Assembly: GCA_937625935.1 (NCBI GenBank)
Contig: OW569364.1
Location: 124,001-188,000 of the forward strand
From: Tetramitus jugosus
Taxonomy: Eukaryota > Protista > Heterolobosea
DNA: 64,000 nucleotides
Direction of reading: 5' to 3'
The notes beneath the pieces are model-generated. The model saw nothing but the letters and a program-made list of their open reading frames with translations. It ran no database searches and had not been told where the DNA came from. Below, piece after piece: positions 36,277 through 51,721 of this stretch. The position numbers were made by a program, and so were the translations under genes. Each line of letters opens with the position of its first letter. Within the stretch, counting starts at the first letter, position 1.

Positions 36277-37410
36277 ATGACCAACGAACAACAACAACAA
36301 CAATCAGTACCATCCAGCATCTCTGACAGCGTACTCAAAAAATCAAATGATTCCATGATTGACAAATCACACATTATAGAAGGCTTTGATTTCAACAAGG
36401 GCGTCCAATATGATCAAATGTTTGATTCTTACAAGTACATGGGATTCCAAGCGACAAACGTTGGTAGAGCGATTGATCAAATCAATCAAATGATTGACTG
36501 GAGAAATGAAACACAAGAAGAAAATCAAGAAAATCAAGAACAAGAGGAAAAAGATACGAGAAAAGCTTTGGGTCATGAATGCAAAATTTTTCTAGGTTAC
36601 ACATCCAATATGATCTCTTGTGGCATGAGAGAAATTATTCGATTTCTTGTTCAGCACAAAATGGTGGACTGTATCGTGACTACGGCCGGCGGTGTCGAAG
36701 AAGATTTGATCAAGTGTTTGGCCGACACGTACCTCGGAGATTTTAATTTGTCGGGAAAGCAATTGCGCGAAAATGGATTGAACAGAATCGGAAATTTGTT
36801 GGTTCCAAATGACAATTATTGCAAGTTTGAGGATTGGATCAATCCGATATTGGATGAAATGCTAAAGGAACAAAAGGAGAGCAATGGAGAGGTGATTTGG
36901 TCTCCTAGCACCATGATTGCTCGATTCGGAAAGGAAATTAATGATGAGCGCTCCGTTTACTATTGGGCTCAAAAGAATGATATTCCGGTGTTTTGTCCCG
37001 CCATTACCGACGGTTCCATTGGCGACATGATTTATTTCCATTCGTTCAAGAGCCCTGGTTTGATTGTGGATATCGCGAGCGATATCCGATGCATCAACTC
37101 AATGGCCGTTCATGCAAAGAAGACTGGAATGATTATTCTAGGTGGTGGTGTCGTCAAGCATCACATTTGCAATGCAAACTTGATGAGAAACGGAGCTGAT
37201 TTCTCAGTGTTTATCAACACTGGTGTCGAGTTTGACGGCAGTGATACAGGTGCTCATCCAGATGAGGCAGTGAGCTGGGGTAAGATTAGAGCGGGATCCA
37301 CCGCGATTAAGGTTCACGGAGAAGCCACGCTCATCTTCCCCATTATCGTTGGACAGACATTTGCTAAAAAGTATCACCAATTGCAACAGCAAAAGCAACA
37401 ACAACAGTAA
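36277..37410 (+). CDS. DHPS: Deoxyhypusine synthase
   Basis: [44 protein letters not shown] (catalytic Lys intact). Confidence 0.97.
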
Positions 37411-40940: not shown

Positions 40941-41059
40941 GTCTACGTTCATACAATGGTGGAACCACCTCTTCCCATTTCGAATAGAGAAGTTAAGCAC
41001 CATCTGGCTGAGTTAGTATTGAGATAGGAGACTACTCGAGAACCCTCAGTAATGTAGGC
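40941..41059 (+). rRNA. 5S rRNA gene, copy 1
   Basis: 119 nt, GTCTAC...GTAGGC terminal stem, box A AGTTAAGC, GTTAGTA, box C-like GATAGGAGAC, followed by a TTTT Pol III terminator. Confidence 0.95.
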
Positions 41060-41299
41060 TTTTGCATTCTCACAGCACGCATTTTGGTGGAGATGCATTT
41101 GATGAATGTGATCAAATCTGCGACCCAAAGAGCTGTGATTCTAGGATCTGAGTACACATTGGGAGAGAGAAGAGGAACATAAGAGTAAGAGACCCACTTG
41201 AGTTCTGAATAAGGTTGATACTAAGTGTACCACAACCAAGCACACTCTGTAACTACCTCGAATTTAGACCAAGTTGCCATTGGATCTGTTGCTGATTCT

Positions 41300-42349: not shown

Positions 42350-42468
42350 GTCTACGTTCATACAATGGTGGAACCACCTCTTCCCATTTCGAATAGAGAA
42401 GTTAAGCACCATCTGGCTGAGTTAGTATTGAGATAGGAGACTACTCGAGAACCCTCAGTAATGTAGGC
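42350..42468 (+). rRNA. 5S rRNA gene, copy 2
   Basis: Identical to copy 1 over 119 nt, followed by TTTT; different upstream flank. Confidence 0.95.
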
Positions 42469-42589
42469 TTTTCACATTTTAACTTGCTCTGGTGATAGCG
42501 CAGGACAATGCAGAGTTAAAGGAAGGATCTTTGTTTCATGAAGTTTTGTTTATGAAATGTACAAGATGTGTGATGTCTCTCATCATCAC

Positions 42590-44121
42590 TTACTGGCAGG
42601 AGCAATCCTTTTTCTTCTTTTCATCCTTCTTGGTAGATGAATTGGCTGGAGCAGAGGCTTCTCTGCATTGACGAACCTGTTGCACCAACAGTTCAAACGC
42701 CTCGTCAATATTGACTCTTCCTTTGGCAGATGTCTCAATAAATGCACAACCGAATCGGTCGGCCAAATCTTTGCCTTGTTGCGTCGATATCTTTCTCTCG
42801 TTCGCCAAATCGCACTTGTTACCGACCAATACAATGGGTATGTTTTTTTTACGTTTTGCCATCATCACCTTGCTATGAAGGGTTTCCAAATGCTGGAACG
42901 ATGGGGCATCAGTCACCGAGTAAATCAAGAAGAATCCTTCCACATCTACAAACAACAACAACAAACAAAAGTTGTGTGTAAGCAACAATTGTTTTTTAGA
43001 GAAGCTAACAACAACAACAACAACAACGTAAACTCATTTTGAATCTTCTCTTGTAGTTGTTGTGATTCAATACATACTTTGCATGTGCTCTTCAGCAAGT
43101 GCCGTATACTTTTCATTTCCAGACGTATCATACACTGTAAAATCAACCACTTTGTCTCCTACTTTCTTTGATGTCTCATACTGTATCAACACAACATTGA
43201 AAAAAAACAAATACAGTGTTAGTTCTGAGCTGCTCATCAAATTTCACACACAAAAACAATAAACACAATTTTGTCAAAAACGCTCAATTAAAGAGAGAGA
43301 GAGTTGTGTGTGTGTGTGTGCGTGTTTGTGAGAGCTATCATGCATCATTCAATCTAGTATGTGCAGCCTTCTCATCATCATATGATGTTTAAATAAAAGA
43401 TATGTGTCATTTCACAATGATTACTCATTCCTCTCAATGTCTTTCTGACAAATTGCGACACTCATCTATTCGCTCACTCACAATACACTCACAATACACT
43501 CGCTAAATCACTCACTTGCACACTCTCCACATTTACACTCACACACACACACTCTCTCTCACTGTGATGCGAAACACGTGGTCTCATAAACATCTAGATG
43601 ATTTGTTGTTTACGAAAAAAAAACACACACGTACAAAGTCCTCCATGGTTGGATCATGATCTAATCATCCATATCATCATTATCATTACACAGTCAAATG
43701 TTCCACCGACATGTATGATATCATATACATGATTCGATCGAACGTATTGCATACAAAATTTTATCAGTAACATCATCATCATCAAGTTTGTTTCGTTTCG
43801 TTGTTGTCATTCCACATCATTTTTCCAAGGCATTCCAAATGGTTTGCGCAATTGATGTCATTGTTGTTTTGTGTCAAATGCATTTTTTTTTGTGCAAACA
43901 AAAACAGCCAAAAAAAAAATTTTTTTTGCAAGGACAAAGAATGTGTGTCAGCATCTATATGTGTCTATCAATTATCTAGATATCTCAAAATTCTTTCATC
44001 ATTCGACACACAACGTACCTTCCAAGAACTCTTGTCGAACAAATTGAACGACAATGCAAGTTTTTCCGACTGCAAAGGCACCAAATGTGCCAAATTCCAT
44101 AGTTTCTCGTGTTGAAGCCAT
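42590..44121 (-). CDS. Atypical Ras-family GTPase; exons 44121-44019, 43660-43635 (26-nt micro-exon), 43180-43078, 42945-42590
   Basis: GAFAVGKT, DHDPTMEDFY, DTSGNE, GNKCDL, ETSAK, polybasic tail and CSCQ CAAX. All junctions are GT-AG and in frame. Confidence 0.88.
43291..43330. repeat. (AG)n/(TG)n microsatellite in a Ras intron
   Basis: aagagagagagagttgtgtgtgtgtgtgtgcgtgt; a complementary (CA)n(CT)n tract lies at ~43540-43562. Confidence 0.7.
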
Positions 44122-44517
44122 TTTTAAGTTGAATGAGATTCGTGTTCTTTTGTTGGTTTGTTTGGTTCTTCTCAGCTGAAATTCTTTTTTGTTGTTGGTT
44201 GGATATTTCTCCTTCTTGAAGATTTTTTTTGACGTTTGGACGTCTGGCTCCGCTACGACATTGACCAAAACAGGAATGGCTACGAAAAAGCGGCGACACT
44301 ACAGGCTACGATATGAGCACTTCTTCAGCCGGAAGTGTAACTTGCATCCAAACTTGAATGATTTGCATCTCCAAAAATTCTTTTGGAGCCTTATCTTTCG
44401 GGACATAGTTTTTTCTTTGGTTTTTAGAAACTTAGTTAAGCAACATCTGAGAACCATAACGTCTACTAAAGTATTGGTGAGAGTTTATTAGCCTTGAGAG
44501 CTTGCCATCGTCACATC

Positions 44518-45168
44518 TTAGAGAAAGTCTATTGTCACATCTGACAACTTGACTTTCCCAAGTGTTAGCAGCAAATTCTTTCTAAAACCTGAAATCTGTT
44601 TCTCATCTGTCTCAACAAGATAGGGTCTGAACTGATCTTGTTCACCTGGTAATATCACTGCATAGACCCAAACTCGGCGAATCTGATCATTTTCACAGCA
44701 CCGAATCAATTCTGCTTGCCATGGTTCTTTGTCACTTGTCTTGGGTAGTTTCATTGTCACCTTCTTTACTGATAAAATTCGATCAAATGTTTCAAGCACA
44801 AACTCATGAATCATGTCTGACTTCACCTTTCCCTGACACAGCAACTTCACTGTTTGACTCGAGGGTACTAACACTGTGACGTCATGCATTGCCAAGATTT
44901 TCAAGTCAAAGCACTCTCCTGTTTCAACTGTTCTTCCCTGAAAGAACATCCAATGTTGGGCAAAATTTCTTCCAATTAATCTCTTCGTTTTTGCAGTCAC
45001 ATGAAACGTGAACGATTCATCACCACACCGCTCACTCTTTTTGTTGAGCAACTTTCGAATGCGGTAGCTGTGCTGGGCAACCTCTTGGATGCAGATGCAG
45101 TGATTCACTTGCACTTCTCGAGCGGGAAGCGTCACTTGCACCCAATCTTGAATGCTTGGTATATCCAT
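44518..45168 (-). CDS. Tandem paralog 1, diverged eIF5A-like protein
   Basis: Clear paralog of the two upstream ORFs; colinear similarity to eIF5A by eye (see findings). Confidence 0.65.
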   Translation of the reverse strand: MDIPSIQDWVQVTLPAREVQVNHCICIQEVAQHSYRIRKLLNKKSERCGDESFTFHVTAKTKRLIGRNFAQHWMFFQGRTVETGECFDLKILAMHDVTVLVPSSQTVKLLCQGKVKSDMIHEFVLETFDRILSVKKVTMKLPKTSDKEPWQAELIRCCENDQIRRVWVYAVILPGEQDQFRPYLVETDEKQISGFRKNLLLTLGKVKLSDVTIDFL

Positions 45169-45366
45169 TTCTTTTGGAGTTTTTTCTTTCCGGACATGTT
45201 GTTTAGTTTGGAACTCAGTGTTGGGTACTGGAACTTGAGCGTCAGCGCGAATCGAAACAGTGATTCCATGTCTGACACATAACAAAGCTATTGGAGGAGT
45301 CTTGTTAGTTAAGTTGGTCCCACTGTATTATAACTCGCTCCGATTAATTGTCATGGTCATCAAAGC

Positions 45367-45957
45367 TCAGAGAAAATTGATTGTCACATCCGATAACTTC
45401 AGATTCACAAGCGTCACCAGCAAATTCTTTCTAAAACCCGTAATCAATTTCTCATCTGTCTCAGCAAGATAAGGTCTGAATTGATCATCAGGCAACATCA
45501 CTGCAGAGACCCAAACTCGACGAATCTGTTCTCTCTCCCAGTTGTGCACGAATTCAGCACTTGTTTCAGACAATTTCAATGGCACTTCTTCGATTGACAA
45601 GCATCGATCAACAGGTTCAAACAAAAACTCGTGACTCGTTGCTGACTTTCGCTTGAACTGCAATTTCACTGTTTGATTCCTGGGTACTAACACTGTCAGC
45701 TGATGTTCGACCACCATTTTCAACTCTAAAGATTGTCCTGTCTCAACTTTTTTCCCCTGAAAAATCATCCAATCTCTCATAGAATGTCTTGTCTTTCCAA
45801 GTACCCTCATCCTTCTTGCAGTCACACGGAAAGTGAATGATTCATGGTCACATACCTGGCTTGGATCAACAGCTTTTGGGATGTAGTTGTTCACTTGTAC
45901 GTCTTGCGCTCGAAGTATTACTTGCACACAATCTTGAATACTCGGATGCATCTCCAT
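45367..45957 (-). CDS. Tandem paralog 2, diverged eIF5A-like protein
   Basis: Shares IQD.VQV...A..VQVN, FTF.VT, QIRRVWV.AV.LP, TDEK.I.GFRKNLL with paralogs 1 and 3. Confidence 0.65.
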   Translation of the reverse strand: MEMHPSIQDCVQVILRAQDVQVNNYIPKAVDPSQVCDHESFTFRVTARRMRVLGKTRHSMRDWMIFQGKKVETGQSLELKMVVEHQLTVLVPRNQTVKLQFKRKSATSHEFLFEPVDRCLSIEEVPLKLSETSAEFVHNWEREQIRRVWVSAVMLPDDQFRPYLAETDEKLITGFRKNLLVTLVNLKLSDVTINFL

Positions 45958-46148
45958 TCTTTGTCTTTTTTGGTTTGGTAATGTGTTGTTTGGTTCGAGT
46001 ATCTGAGTCTTGTTGAGTCTCGTGGGTTGTTAAGAGACTTGGGCTTAGAAGCGAACAATATCTGCAATGCTTCAGACAATTTTCTCAGGTGATTGAAAAC
46101 TGCAAGCAGTGAACTTTTGTGCGTGGAGAACCGACTCAGTATCAAATC

Positions 46149-46724
46149 TTAGAGAAAGTAGATTGTCACGTCTGATAACTTGACACGCTCAAGAATCACC
46201 AGCAAATTCTTTCTAAAACCTGTAATCAATTTCTCATCTGTCTCAACAAGATAAGGTCTGAATTGATCATCAGGCAACATCACTGCAGAGACCCAAACTC
46301 GACGAATCTGCTCCCTCTCCCAGCACTGAATCAGCTCAACACTTGTTTCAGACAATTTCAATGTCACCTCTTTCTCGGACAAGCATCTATCAATAGGCTC
46401 AAACACAAACTCATTACTCGATGTTGATTTCTTTCCTTTGTACAGCAATTTCACTGTCTGATTTCTCGGAACGAACACAGTCACATCCTCTCTCACTAAT
46501 TTTTTCAAGTAAGATCTCTCTTTTTCAAATGTATTTCCCCAAAAGTATATCAAAGGGCCGTTGATGGCGCAGCATCTTCCTCGCACCCTCTTCTTTCTAT
46601 CGGTCACATGGAAAGTGAACTGTCTCTGGTCAACTACTTTTTGGAGGCATATGAAATGGTTCACTTGAACTTCTTGCGCTGGAAGGTTTACTTGTACACA
46701 ATCTTGAATGTTATGCATCTCCAT
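46149..46724 (-). CDS. Tandem paralog 3, diverged eIF5A-like protein
   Basis: As above; the 3' half is nearly identical to paralog 2 at DNA level. Confidence 0.65.
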   Translation of the reverse strand: MEMHNIQDCVQVNLPAQEVQVNHFICLQKVVDQRQFTFHVTDRKKRVRGRCCAINGPLIYFWGNTFEKERSYLKKLVREDVTVFVPRNQTVKLLYKGKKSTSSNEFVFEPIDRCLSEKEVTLKLSETSVELIQCWEREQIRRVWVSAVMLPDDQFRPYLVETDEKLITGFRKNLLVILERVKLSDVTIYFL

Positions 46725-46803: not shown

Positions 46804-47967
46804 CTACGGCATAACGTGAAGTTGTTGGGTGGGGCTCTTGTTACCTTTGCCGCGTACTAGGAGAGATGCCCGCTTCATTTGGTTTGTTGGTGGGAGTTTC
46901 CTTTGGGTAGACGGCCGAGAGTCCTTCGTGAATCGAACACTGCCATTGGAACAAATCGAAGCTATTTTGTGGTCTGAAAGAGCTGAGGTAGGTCTGACTA
47001 TTAGCTGTTCAGGATAGTATCCCAATGTTGAATTACTTCGAGACAAGACACCTATAGTAGGTTCTATTTTGTTCGGTTTAGGGTGATCAATCCTCATTTG
47101 AAGTTGAAGACGACTTAATCTCCCCTCCATATCAATTCGGTCAACTTTCATCTTTTCAATCTCGGAGTCCTTGTCTCTCAACTGTTTCCGTAGAGCGGCT
47201 ATTAGATGATTGTTGCTTTCCAACACTTCTTGACCTCTAGGATCATATCTTCTGTGTTCCCTTTGAGTGTTCATACTCACTAACTTTAGTCTTCTTTCTA
47301 AATCAGTTAATTGAGCTTCTAGAGTTTCGTTCTTCTGGATCCACATTTCCTTCTCTTCTTGAGTTCGCATTAACTGTTCATAGACGATATTTGTATTCAT
47401 GTTCTTTGGAGACCTTACAAACCCATGACTTGGGTCGTTCAAAATATCAGGTAGTGTGAACTGCTTTGATTCAAGTTCTGCTATTCTCTTTAGCATGATT
47501 TTCTCCTTTTCGTCATAATCAGCCTTACAAGTATCCATCTGTGCATTTAGCGCCGATAATTCCTTCTTCAATTTGTCCATCTGTTCTCTTAACAGTTCAT
47601 TTTCTTTTGTTAATGATTTTATCGATGTTTGTTCTTTGGTTGTAACATGCTGAGGTATTGCAACTGGAATGATGTCATTCTTTTTAGATCGAATTCCCAC
47701 TGGTGACCTGACCATGTACTGTAGATCTGTGCGCGGTGTTAGCGACCAAGACAAGTACTCGTCGTTTGATATGTTCATCAGAGAAGATATCGCATTTCCT
47801 TCCATTGAGGACAATGTCAATTCCTCCTCTTGCTCTTCGTCCTCTTGGTTGGCTGGCTCTTCGTCGTTCCTAGGAAGGAACCTTTTCAGGTCTAACTGAG
47901 GTTTCTTGAATGTTTTCACTTTGGAAGGAGGTTGTTCCTGTTTTGCAAAATTGTCGTCTTCATCCAT
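46804..47967 (-). CDS. Coiled-coil hypothetical protein
   Basis: 387-aa ORF with long E/K/Q/L heptad-like stretches. Confidence 0.7.
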   Translation of the reverse strand: MDEDDNFAKQEQPPSKVKTFKKPQLDLKRFLPRNDEEPANQEDEEQEEELTLSSMEGNAISSLMNISNDEYLSWSLTPRTDLQYMVRSPVGIRSKKNDIIPVAIPQHVTTKEQTSIKSLTKENELLREQMDKLKKELSALNAQMDTCKADYDEKEKIMLKRIAELESKQFTLPDILNDPSHGFVRSPKNMNTNIVYEQLMRTQEEKEMWIQKNETLEAQLTDLERRLKLVSMNTQREHRRYDPRGQEVLESNNHLIAALRKQLRDKDSEIEKMKVDRIDMEGRLSRLQLQMRIDHPKPNKIEPTIGVLSRSNSTLGYYPEQLIVRPTSALSDHKIASICSNGSVRFTKDSRPSTQRKLPPTNQMKRASLLVRGKGNKSPTQQLHVMP

Positions 47968-50371: not shown

Positions 50372-51358
50372 TTAACACAAAATACATTTTCCACTCGCGT
50401 TTCTGCGCATGTAATATCCGATGAGTGCGCATCTTGCCAGAGTGTCATGAAACTCCACATGTAGATTCTGTCCGCTGAGTGCACTGGTTTCTATGTACAA
50501 CATACAGTTATGGTGTTGGGCCAAGCACTCTCCTTCTTCTTGCGTGACCATATCCAAAACATTCGATAAAGGATGAGAAGGTCTGTCTCTCAAATCGATT
50601 TTGGTTCCCACTAACATTGCGATTGCTTCAGGCCAGTGATGCATGATTTCAAACAACCACTTCTTTGTAATGTTCTGAAAGCTCGAATGATTGACAACAG
50701 AGAAGCACACGAGGAAAATATCAGTGTCTGGATAGGATAGAGGTCTCCACCGGTCATAGTCGTCTGACGCAGCAGTGTCCCAAAATATGATTGATCTTTT
50801 CAATCCTCCCCACGTTGTCTCAACACGATAATTTTCCATTACATTGTAGTACTCTGGGAAATACTTTTGATCAGCTCTGATTTGTAGACGTGTCTTACCC
50901 ACGGATCCATCTCCTATGACAACAACCTTGATGTTATCCAGTTTTTTCTTCTTCACTTGAATCATGTCAACAGAGAACTCATCTAATCCATTGAAGCCAA
51001 GGTATTTATGATGTGGACGATCCAATATTGAAGGTACAGTAACCATGTCTTTCTTTCTTTTTTCAATAACGTCAGACAAGACTTGTTTTAGAAGCAGTAC
51101 TTTGTCCCTGTAGTTGCTCACGGATTGGCTGCGCTCCAGAAAACTCGATTTAATGGATTCATATCTAGGACGATCAATGACAGAATGAAACACAGGCTCC
51201 CACAAGTGATTGTGCCCTGTTAGTTCAAACATGTTCCATGACTTTTGCGCAAGCCTCGCGTGACTCAAGTCACAAACTTCCAAGAAGGACAGAATAACAA
51301 GTGAAACGTCATCAGGCAATAGCCAATGCAAGTCACTCTCCTGTTCAAGTTCACACAT
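50372..51358 (-). CDS. F-box + Rho/Rac-like GTPase fusion with CAAX
   Basis: LPDDVSLVILSFL...DL...RL..KSW (F-box); KVVVIGDGSVGKT, WDTAAS, RPLSYPDTDIFLVCFSV, GTKIDLR, ETSAL; ends CILC. Confidence 0.88.
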   Translation of the reverse strand: MCELEQESDLHWLLPDDVSLVILSFLEVCDLSHARLAQKSWNMFELTGHNHLWEPVFHSVIDRPRYESIKSSFLERSQSVSNYRDKVLLLKQVLSDVIEKRKKDMVTVPSILDRPHHKYLGFNGLDEFSVDMIQVKKKKLDNIKVVVIGDGSVGKTRLQIRADQKYFPEYYNVMENYRVETTWGGLKRSIIFWDTAASDDYDRWRPLSYPDTDIFLVCFSVVNHSSFQNITKKWLFEIMHHWPEAIAMLVGTKIDLRDRPSHPLSNVLDMVTQEEGECLAQHHNCMLYIETSALSGQNLHVEFHDTLARCALIGYYMRRNASGKCILC

Positions 51359-51561: not shown

Positions 51562-51680
51562 GTCTACGTTCATACAATGGTGGAACCACCTCTTCCCATT
51601 TCGAATAGAGAAGTTAAGCACCATCTGGCTGAGTTAGTATTGAGATAGGAGACTACTCGAGAACCCTCAGTAATGTAGGC
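51562..51680 (+). rRNA. 5S rRNA gene, copy 3
   Basis: Identical 119 nt followed by TTTT; shares ~37 bp of upstream flank with copy 1. Confidence 0.95.
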
Positions 51681-51721
51681 TTTTGCAATTTCTTGACTTT
51701 GCCCAATCAAAAGAGAAAAAC

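Follow-up and report, generated by a model that had tools for sequence, protein, structure and literature searches.

eIF5A is among the most conserved proteins of eukaryotes. The textbook case of a free-standing duplicate of eIF5A that was repurposed for a new job is Hex1. The route taken by Hex1 (HexA), the protein of the Woronin body, was duplication of eIF5A followed by the acquisition of new features (PMC6371581). The conserved loop SKTGKHGHA is the part that deoxyhypusine synthase (DHPS) draws into its tunnel (PMC10042821). In bacterial EF-P and EfpL the corresponding loop is variable, sometimes lengthened and tipped with an unmodified Arg, and EfpL acts with such an Arg on a prolonged loop (PMC11611912); these factors have three domains and conserved ribosome contacts. 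Nmd3, a large conserved 60S export adaptor, contains an unmodified eIF5A-like domain with the same two-barrel fold, which sits in the ribosomal E site (PMC5536393) and which sequence profiles miss.

The genes considered here lie in a stretch of 64,000 nucleotides from the heterolobosean Tetramitus jugosus (hereafter the window). They form three ORFs in the same orientation, pA, pB and pC, with pairwise identity of 56-66% (table 1). A sequence-only reading of the window had described them as three intronless paralogues of 191-216 amino acids without annotation, and this is borne out both by the uninterrupted ORFs and by the databases, as there is no credible match in Pfam, NCBIfam, PHROGs or PDB sequences. 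It had also described a tandem trio; the three tandem ORFs are real, but the family has a fourth copy, pD (220 amino acids, C33:238188-238847, 40-45% identical to the trio), which was found in the search of the whole genome (26.35 Mb, 56 contigs). The four-gene family is real, and it is fast-evolving. A fifth weak genome match, on contig C11, is an antisense frame of a coiled-coil gene, and a match of pD to aminoglycoside adenylyltransferase (E 8e-4) is far below the cut-off and is not shared by the other copies; both are regarded as noise. Our preferred explanation, to which we assign a probability of about 0.52, is that these genes are a lineage-restricted family derived from an eIF5A-type duplication and neofunctionalised in the manner of Hex1, and that their products are not elongation factors.

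Table 1. Features of the window discussed in the text (coordinates are those of the window).
Feature	Position	Strand	Remarks
DHPS gene	36277-37410	plus	PF01916, E 3.5e-123; catalytic WGK motif; sole full copy in the genome
5S rRNA genes, three, dispersed	40941-41060, 42350-42469, 51562-51681		identical Rfam scores; flank the trio
Ras-like gene	42590-44172	minus	three introns, 26-nt micro-exon at 43635-43660; splicing in two RNA runs
pC	44518-45168	minus	216 aa counted from the first ATG; uninterrupted ORF
pC basic loop, residues 62-72	44953-44985	minus	predicted hypusine-loop place; 3 residues longer than in eIF5A
pB	45367-45957	minus	196 aa; uninterrupted ORF
pB basic loop, residues 50-60	45778-45810	minus	predicted hypusine-loop place; 5 residues longer than in eIF5A
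pA	46149-46724	minus	191 aa; uninterrupted ORF
Gene-conversion tract, pA/pB	46199-46298 (partner 45417-45516)	minus	100 nt, 98% identical amid 58-78%
pA basic loop, residues 45-55	46560-46592	minus	predicted hypusine-loop place; 5 residues longer than in eIF5A
Coiled-coil ORF adjoining pA	46804-47967	minus	387 aa; hardly any contigs in the RNA library
Fusion of a Ras-family GTPase domain with a weak F-box-like N-terminus	50372-51358	minus	

Outside this genome, no homologues were found in a set of 5.8 billion proteins, in 1.84 billion representatives, in metagenome and viral contigs or in ESM Atlas features; these searches returned only one near-identical fragment (P0121) and weak matches to polyubiquitins. 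As the protein collections include sequences of Acrasis and Willaertia, the family appears to be limited to one lineage, that of T. jugosus. The polyubiquitins were matched by the family profile through a short FxGKxxExG stretch, at about 5.5 bits per repeat, summed across repeats and with the helix core misplaced, and the likeness is considered an artefact. This match, together with the two-barrel fold shared by Nmd3, could be taken to mean that a different SH3-plus-OB module gave rise to the family, the eIF5A-like domain of Nmd3 being one candidate, or that the family has a ubiquitin-like N-half. However, no signal was obtained against the Nmd3 domains of this genome (z at most 0.6) and the top-ranking structural matches included no ubiquitin fold, so that an origin of this kind is improbable. 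The two Nmd3-like genes of the genome, at C24:138391-138687 and C18:122881-123204, with open frames of 485 and 652 amino acids, are both above the PF21192 cut-off.

The by-eye alignment that first connected the trio with eIF5A proposed residue-by-residue colinearity along the whole fold, and no standard method gives this significance. The profile search suggested as a check yielded no significant eIF5A match: the family does not match PF21485, PF01287 or TIGR00037, which in this genome are matched by two genes only, on contigs C34 and C25; family members score at most 1.5 bits in hmmsearch with profiles of 54 eukaryotic and 74 archaeal sequences; HHalign of the family against eIF5A gives a probability of at most 1.4%; and free pairwise global alignments miss the proposed register. 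The second eIF5A of the genome (C25) gave no signal as a stepping stone to the family, and an organellar EF-P that might serve as a bridge was not found. The failure of the HMMs is not a refutation, because the same eIF5A HMM misses the eIF5A-like domain of Nmd3 to the same degree (1.1 bits), although this domain, unlike the family, does thread in the C-domain (z 3.5).

Threading with seven ungapped eIF5A blocks arrived without guidance at the proposed register in pB, in pC, in pD and in the family profile. The signal is weak (z 2.0-2.4) and depends on the block design: nine blocks give z 1.2, and the C-domain threaded by itself gives -0.1. The best diagonal of pD is gapless over 57 residues, which correspond to eIF5A residues 31-87 in the N-domain, and it keeps K41, G43, H47, A48, G60, K61, P68 and V75, that is, eight of the 23 conserved columns. 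This number was reached by 3 of 2000 shuffles and by no decoys, and it concerns one of four copies and was noticed after the fact. When the pD segment is unrestricted, the same diagonal ranks first (p 0.02-0.07 under the two softest profiles), and its score is attained by 2 of 76 decoys; the p values for the SH3-like N-barrel on this diagonal, about 0.002-0.07 altogether, are not corrected for the four copies or for hindsight.

The C-terminal half provides evidence of a different kind. The full-length model, with pLDDT of 33, did not retrieve eIF5A, and its matches to jacalin and other folds are meaningless at that value. The C-half was modelled from five family rows only and without templates, eIF5A rows being kept out because including them would have been circular, and the resulting model (pLDDT 42) has the order strand-strand-strand-helix-strand, as in the OB domain of eIF5A. 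When this model was ranked against 48,161 PDB representatives, the Naegleria eIF5A came second (Z 3.5, rmsd 4.2, 70 aligned residues, chain 85-157), the Trichomonas eIF5A 9th, an archaeal IF5A 22nd and Hex1 (8qlu) 23rd. All four chains were matched on the C-terminal OB domain, colinearly and with Z of 2.9-3.5. The PDB contains at most 35 distinct eIF5A-family sequences; therefore, four of them in the top 23 constitute a marked enrichment, and one that had been predicted in advance. The Z-scores, however, are low and equalled by those of FAD-binding barrels and of other OB folds. For the structure models neither Foldseek, which had been proposed as a check, nor the ESM Atlas gave anything clear.

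These results must be weighed against the possibility that the family is an orphan, beta-rich and unrelated to eIF5A, that the by-eye alignment was primed by the DHPS gene and that a small barrel, if the C-half has one, is of different origin. All standard profile tests are negative, pairwise global alignments miss the register, the structural Z does not exceed 3.5 and is shared with unrelated barrels, and the trio has dispersed 5S genes on either side and, not far away, a Ras-like gene and an F-box-GTPase fusion, all of which would be in keeping with an unrelated orphan. Such an origin would not, however, readily account for the four representatives of the eIF5A family that rank among the first 23 of 48,161 structures and match on the very domain that was predicted, for the gapless match of pD at eight of 23 conserved columns or for the order of secondary-structure elements, which is that of eIF5A. 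We consider it a tenable but doubtful alternative. The proposed eIF5A-type fold has modest support from the C-half ranking, the pD diagonal and the register found unaided, and against it stand the lack of any significant profile and the pLDDT values of 33 and 42. Taking the sequence hint in the N-domain and the fold hint in the C-domain together, we estimate that the family probably, at about 60%, descends from an eIF5A-type gene.

If this homology holds, the hypusination motif has been lost. The quoted loop peptides KRLIGRNFAQH, MRVLGKTRHSM and KRVRGRCCAIN are present in the trio, as is the common C-terminal end, but the SKTGKHGHA loop with its acceptor Lys is absent from the family. The loop at this predicted position has kept a strongly basic character, an Arg and a Gly in it are invariant, and its length, counted from strand 3 to the Gly of strand 4, is the same as in eIF5A in pD and greater in the trio. 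The identity of the tip residue depends on the register. It was initially held that Lys is kept in one copy and replaced by Arg in two; this is true of one register only and needs anchoring on the invariant Gly, and when the hypusine position is anchored on the gapless pD it is occupied by Phe in pD, Ile in pC, Arg in pA and Leu in pB. The loop was also thought to be the most variable part of the proteins. Its dN (0.41-0.68) is indeed higher than in any other aligned part of the trio, but differences in length are greater in the insertion after strand 2, and dN/dS of the loop is 0.3-0.6, which gives no sign of positive selection. The acidic C-terminal domain typical of eIF5A has likewise been lost: the net charge of the C-domain is -2 to +1 in the family, as against -10 in eIF5A and -8 in the second eIF5A paralogue, and the pI is 8.5-8.9, as against 5.1 for eIF5A. 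With the hypusine-loop motif gone, the family most likely does a different job.

A canonical eIF5A gene, for which a search had been advised, was found on contig C34 with its loop intact. The second paralogue, on contig C25 (L091:1261-1827, minus strand), encodes 188 amino acids, is 34% identical and has an acidic N-terminal extension; it keeps the Lys in its loop KSKPGKHGKAK and is above the TIGR00037 cut-off. A 44%-identical relative of this paralogue (P0125), with the loop KAQPGKHGSAK, comes from sequencing-run assemblies. The cell is therefore not dependent on the trio for eIF5A function, and the paralogue on C25 shows that in this lineage eIF5A has been duplicated and a copy has diverged. 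The named eIF5A relatives closest to the eIF5A of this genome are heterolobosean. A sequencing-run assembly also contains P0002, a close eIF5A relative and another diverging eIF5A copy, in which the loop start is altered (TFAKTGKHGHAK) and the STANV segment is changed.

Two functional proposals made for the trio can be examined in this light. According to the first, the proteins are hypusine-independent eIF5A-like factors that enter the E site with an unmodified Arg or Lys on the tip of a lengthened loop, as bacterial EfpL does. Several such ribosome-binding paralogues with Arg/Lys loops of different size would then provide stage- or motif-specific control of elongation beside the two ordinary eIF5A genes. 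The basic loop with its invariant Arg and Gly would suit such a function, for which EfpL and the E-site position of the unmodified Nmd3 domain are precedents; but loop length differs by up to five residues and the tip residue differs across the four copies, the acidic C-domain surface has been lost, and the large insertions, the dN of 0.2-0.5 between paralogues and the 18 amino-acid differences between versions of pC are unlike a ribosome-docking factor. The presence of two recognisable eIF5A genes also speaks against this role, and both the proposal and the elongation control that would follow from it are unlikely.

The second proposal is that the proteins are DHPS decoys or regulators or, in the case of pB, an alternative substrate of DHPS, kept near its gene. 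DHPS is indeed where it had been placed, 7,108 bp from the trio, and simple geometry gives a chance of about 0.0013 that one of the two family loci would lie this near the single DHPS gene, although the pairing was picked after the fact and among many windows. In addition, pB is the sole copy with Gly-Lys in its loop. This loop nevertheless retains just two of the SKTGKHGHA residues and is longer by five. Between DHPS and the trio lie two unrelated ORFs, two 5S genes and the Ras-like gene, and neither pD nor either of the true eIF5A genes is linked to DHPS. We agree with the caution expressed at the outset that the proximity is probably chance, with no functional link, and a role of the proteins as decoy or substrate is very improbable; the nearby DHPS gene may itself have prompted the eIF5A idea. 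Neither functional proposal is supported, because the motif bound by DHPS and the acidic C-domain surface are lost, loop length varies, and two Lys-bearing eIF5A genes exist elsewhere in the genome. A new Hex1-like family was the third possibility suggested by the sequence-only reading, and among the three it fits best.

The genes of the trio are under purifying selection. Pairwise dN/dS, which had been proposed as a check, is 0.24-0.42 within the trio and 0.30-0.35 against pD, and thus not near 1, and the deficit of non-synonymous changes is significant (Fisher p 4e-5 to 5e-13). Conservation is higher in the C-terminal part with its extension than in the N-half, and this is so even against the unlinked pD (dN 0.30-0.41 as compared with 0.56-0.64). 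The copies differ in detail: pA is missing one codon and is without the Gly of the predicted beta4-beta5 turn.

Expression, likewise proposed as a check, is indicated by run X4, an RNA library in which the three GT-AG introns of the neighbouring Ras-like gene are spliced and a poly(A) end is seen. Its contigs span pC and pB and, in pA, the 3' part at the least; pA has the thinnest cover of the trio. The contigs contain no joints and indicate presence, not level. The adjacent 387-aa ORF is mostly without contigs in X4, and genomic DNA is therefore disfavoured as their source. The contig over pB (45465-46006) is exactly the genome sequence. The contig over pC differs from the genome by 28 substitutions, all coding (9 synonymous and 19 non-synonymous), and by at least one extra codon, and these substitutions are indistinguishable from neutral (p 0.15). 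As a nearby intron is similarly divergent, this variant is probably a second haplotype, and it may be an allele mosaic. In the variant (44591-45071) none of the 18 amino-acid changes falls in residues 43-79, where the loop sits. Short low-depth pieces of pB in runs X13, X14 and X16 are of uncertain nature and were left out of the expression evidence.

The array is dynamic, with tandem duplication accompanied by gene conversion between pA and pB (table 1). A metagenome contig (L009:48-753) carries a pA/pB hybrid gene followed directly by the flank of pB and a pC-like start, and array structure therefore differs between strains. No 5S rRNA genes are found within about 10 kb of pD.

Comparison with the known systems leaves the family outside each of them. 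It resembles eIF5A/aIF5A (PF21485 + PF01287) in the predicted order of elements, a predicted OB-like C-half, the N-domain diagonal of pD and a similar core length, but differs in having no Pfam match, no hypusination motif, variable loop length, a neutral C-domain, insertions, a C-terminal extension and fast evolution. With Hex1 it shares the proposed route of duplication and a place for Hex1 among the structural neighbours of the C-half. However, phmmer from eIF5A still finds Hex1 (E 1.5e-5), whereas the family is undetectable; no Hex1 chains occur among the PDB sequence matches to the family at E up to 10; Hex1 has a C-terminal peroxisomal signal, whereas the family ends hydrophobically (YFL, NFL, DFL and VVY in the four proteins) and without an SKL-type signal; and the family is of independent origin, in a heterolobosean. 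Nmd3 offers a parallel for an unmodified eIF5A-like fold beyond the reach of profiles, but its domain has no sequence similarity to the family, which lacks a PF21192 match and the N-terminal Nmd3 domains. The variable loop recalls EF-P and EfpL, but the family has neither an EF-P profile match nor a third domain, and no EF-P occurs among the top 50 structural rows for the C-half model. Judged by the tests that define eIF5A, Hex1, EF-P and Nmd3, the family cannot be filed under any of them; it is a probable eIF5A-fold derivative family, confined to one lineage.

The following course of events would be consistent with these characteristics. An eIF5A-type gene, with its SH3-like barrel followed by an OB barrel, would have been duplicated to give the four-gene family, which would have diverged quickly and, like fungal Hex1, acquired a new function. 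Its proteins would carry no hypusine and would be released from a role in the ribosomal E site; they may be soluble, mildly basic, Cys-rich binding or assembly factors. The constrained working surface would have shifted to the OB barrel together with a C-terminal extension, which is conserved and about 30-45 residues long. The extension is predicted to form an amphipathic helix and a terminal hydrophobic strand that would suit self-association or docking onto a partner. The freed basic loop, variable between copies, may tune binding to RNA or to acidic partners.

If the fold is not confirmed, this is an ordinary small orphan family. If it is confirmed, the family would be a second, independent and far more diverged case beside Hex1, and the genome of T. 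jugosus would hold a graded series, from a canonical eIF5A through a mildly diverged paralogue to an unrecognisable derivative. It would then follow that derivatives of this kind are concealed among orphan genes, where profile searches miss them.
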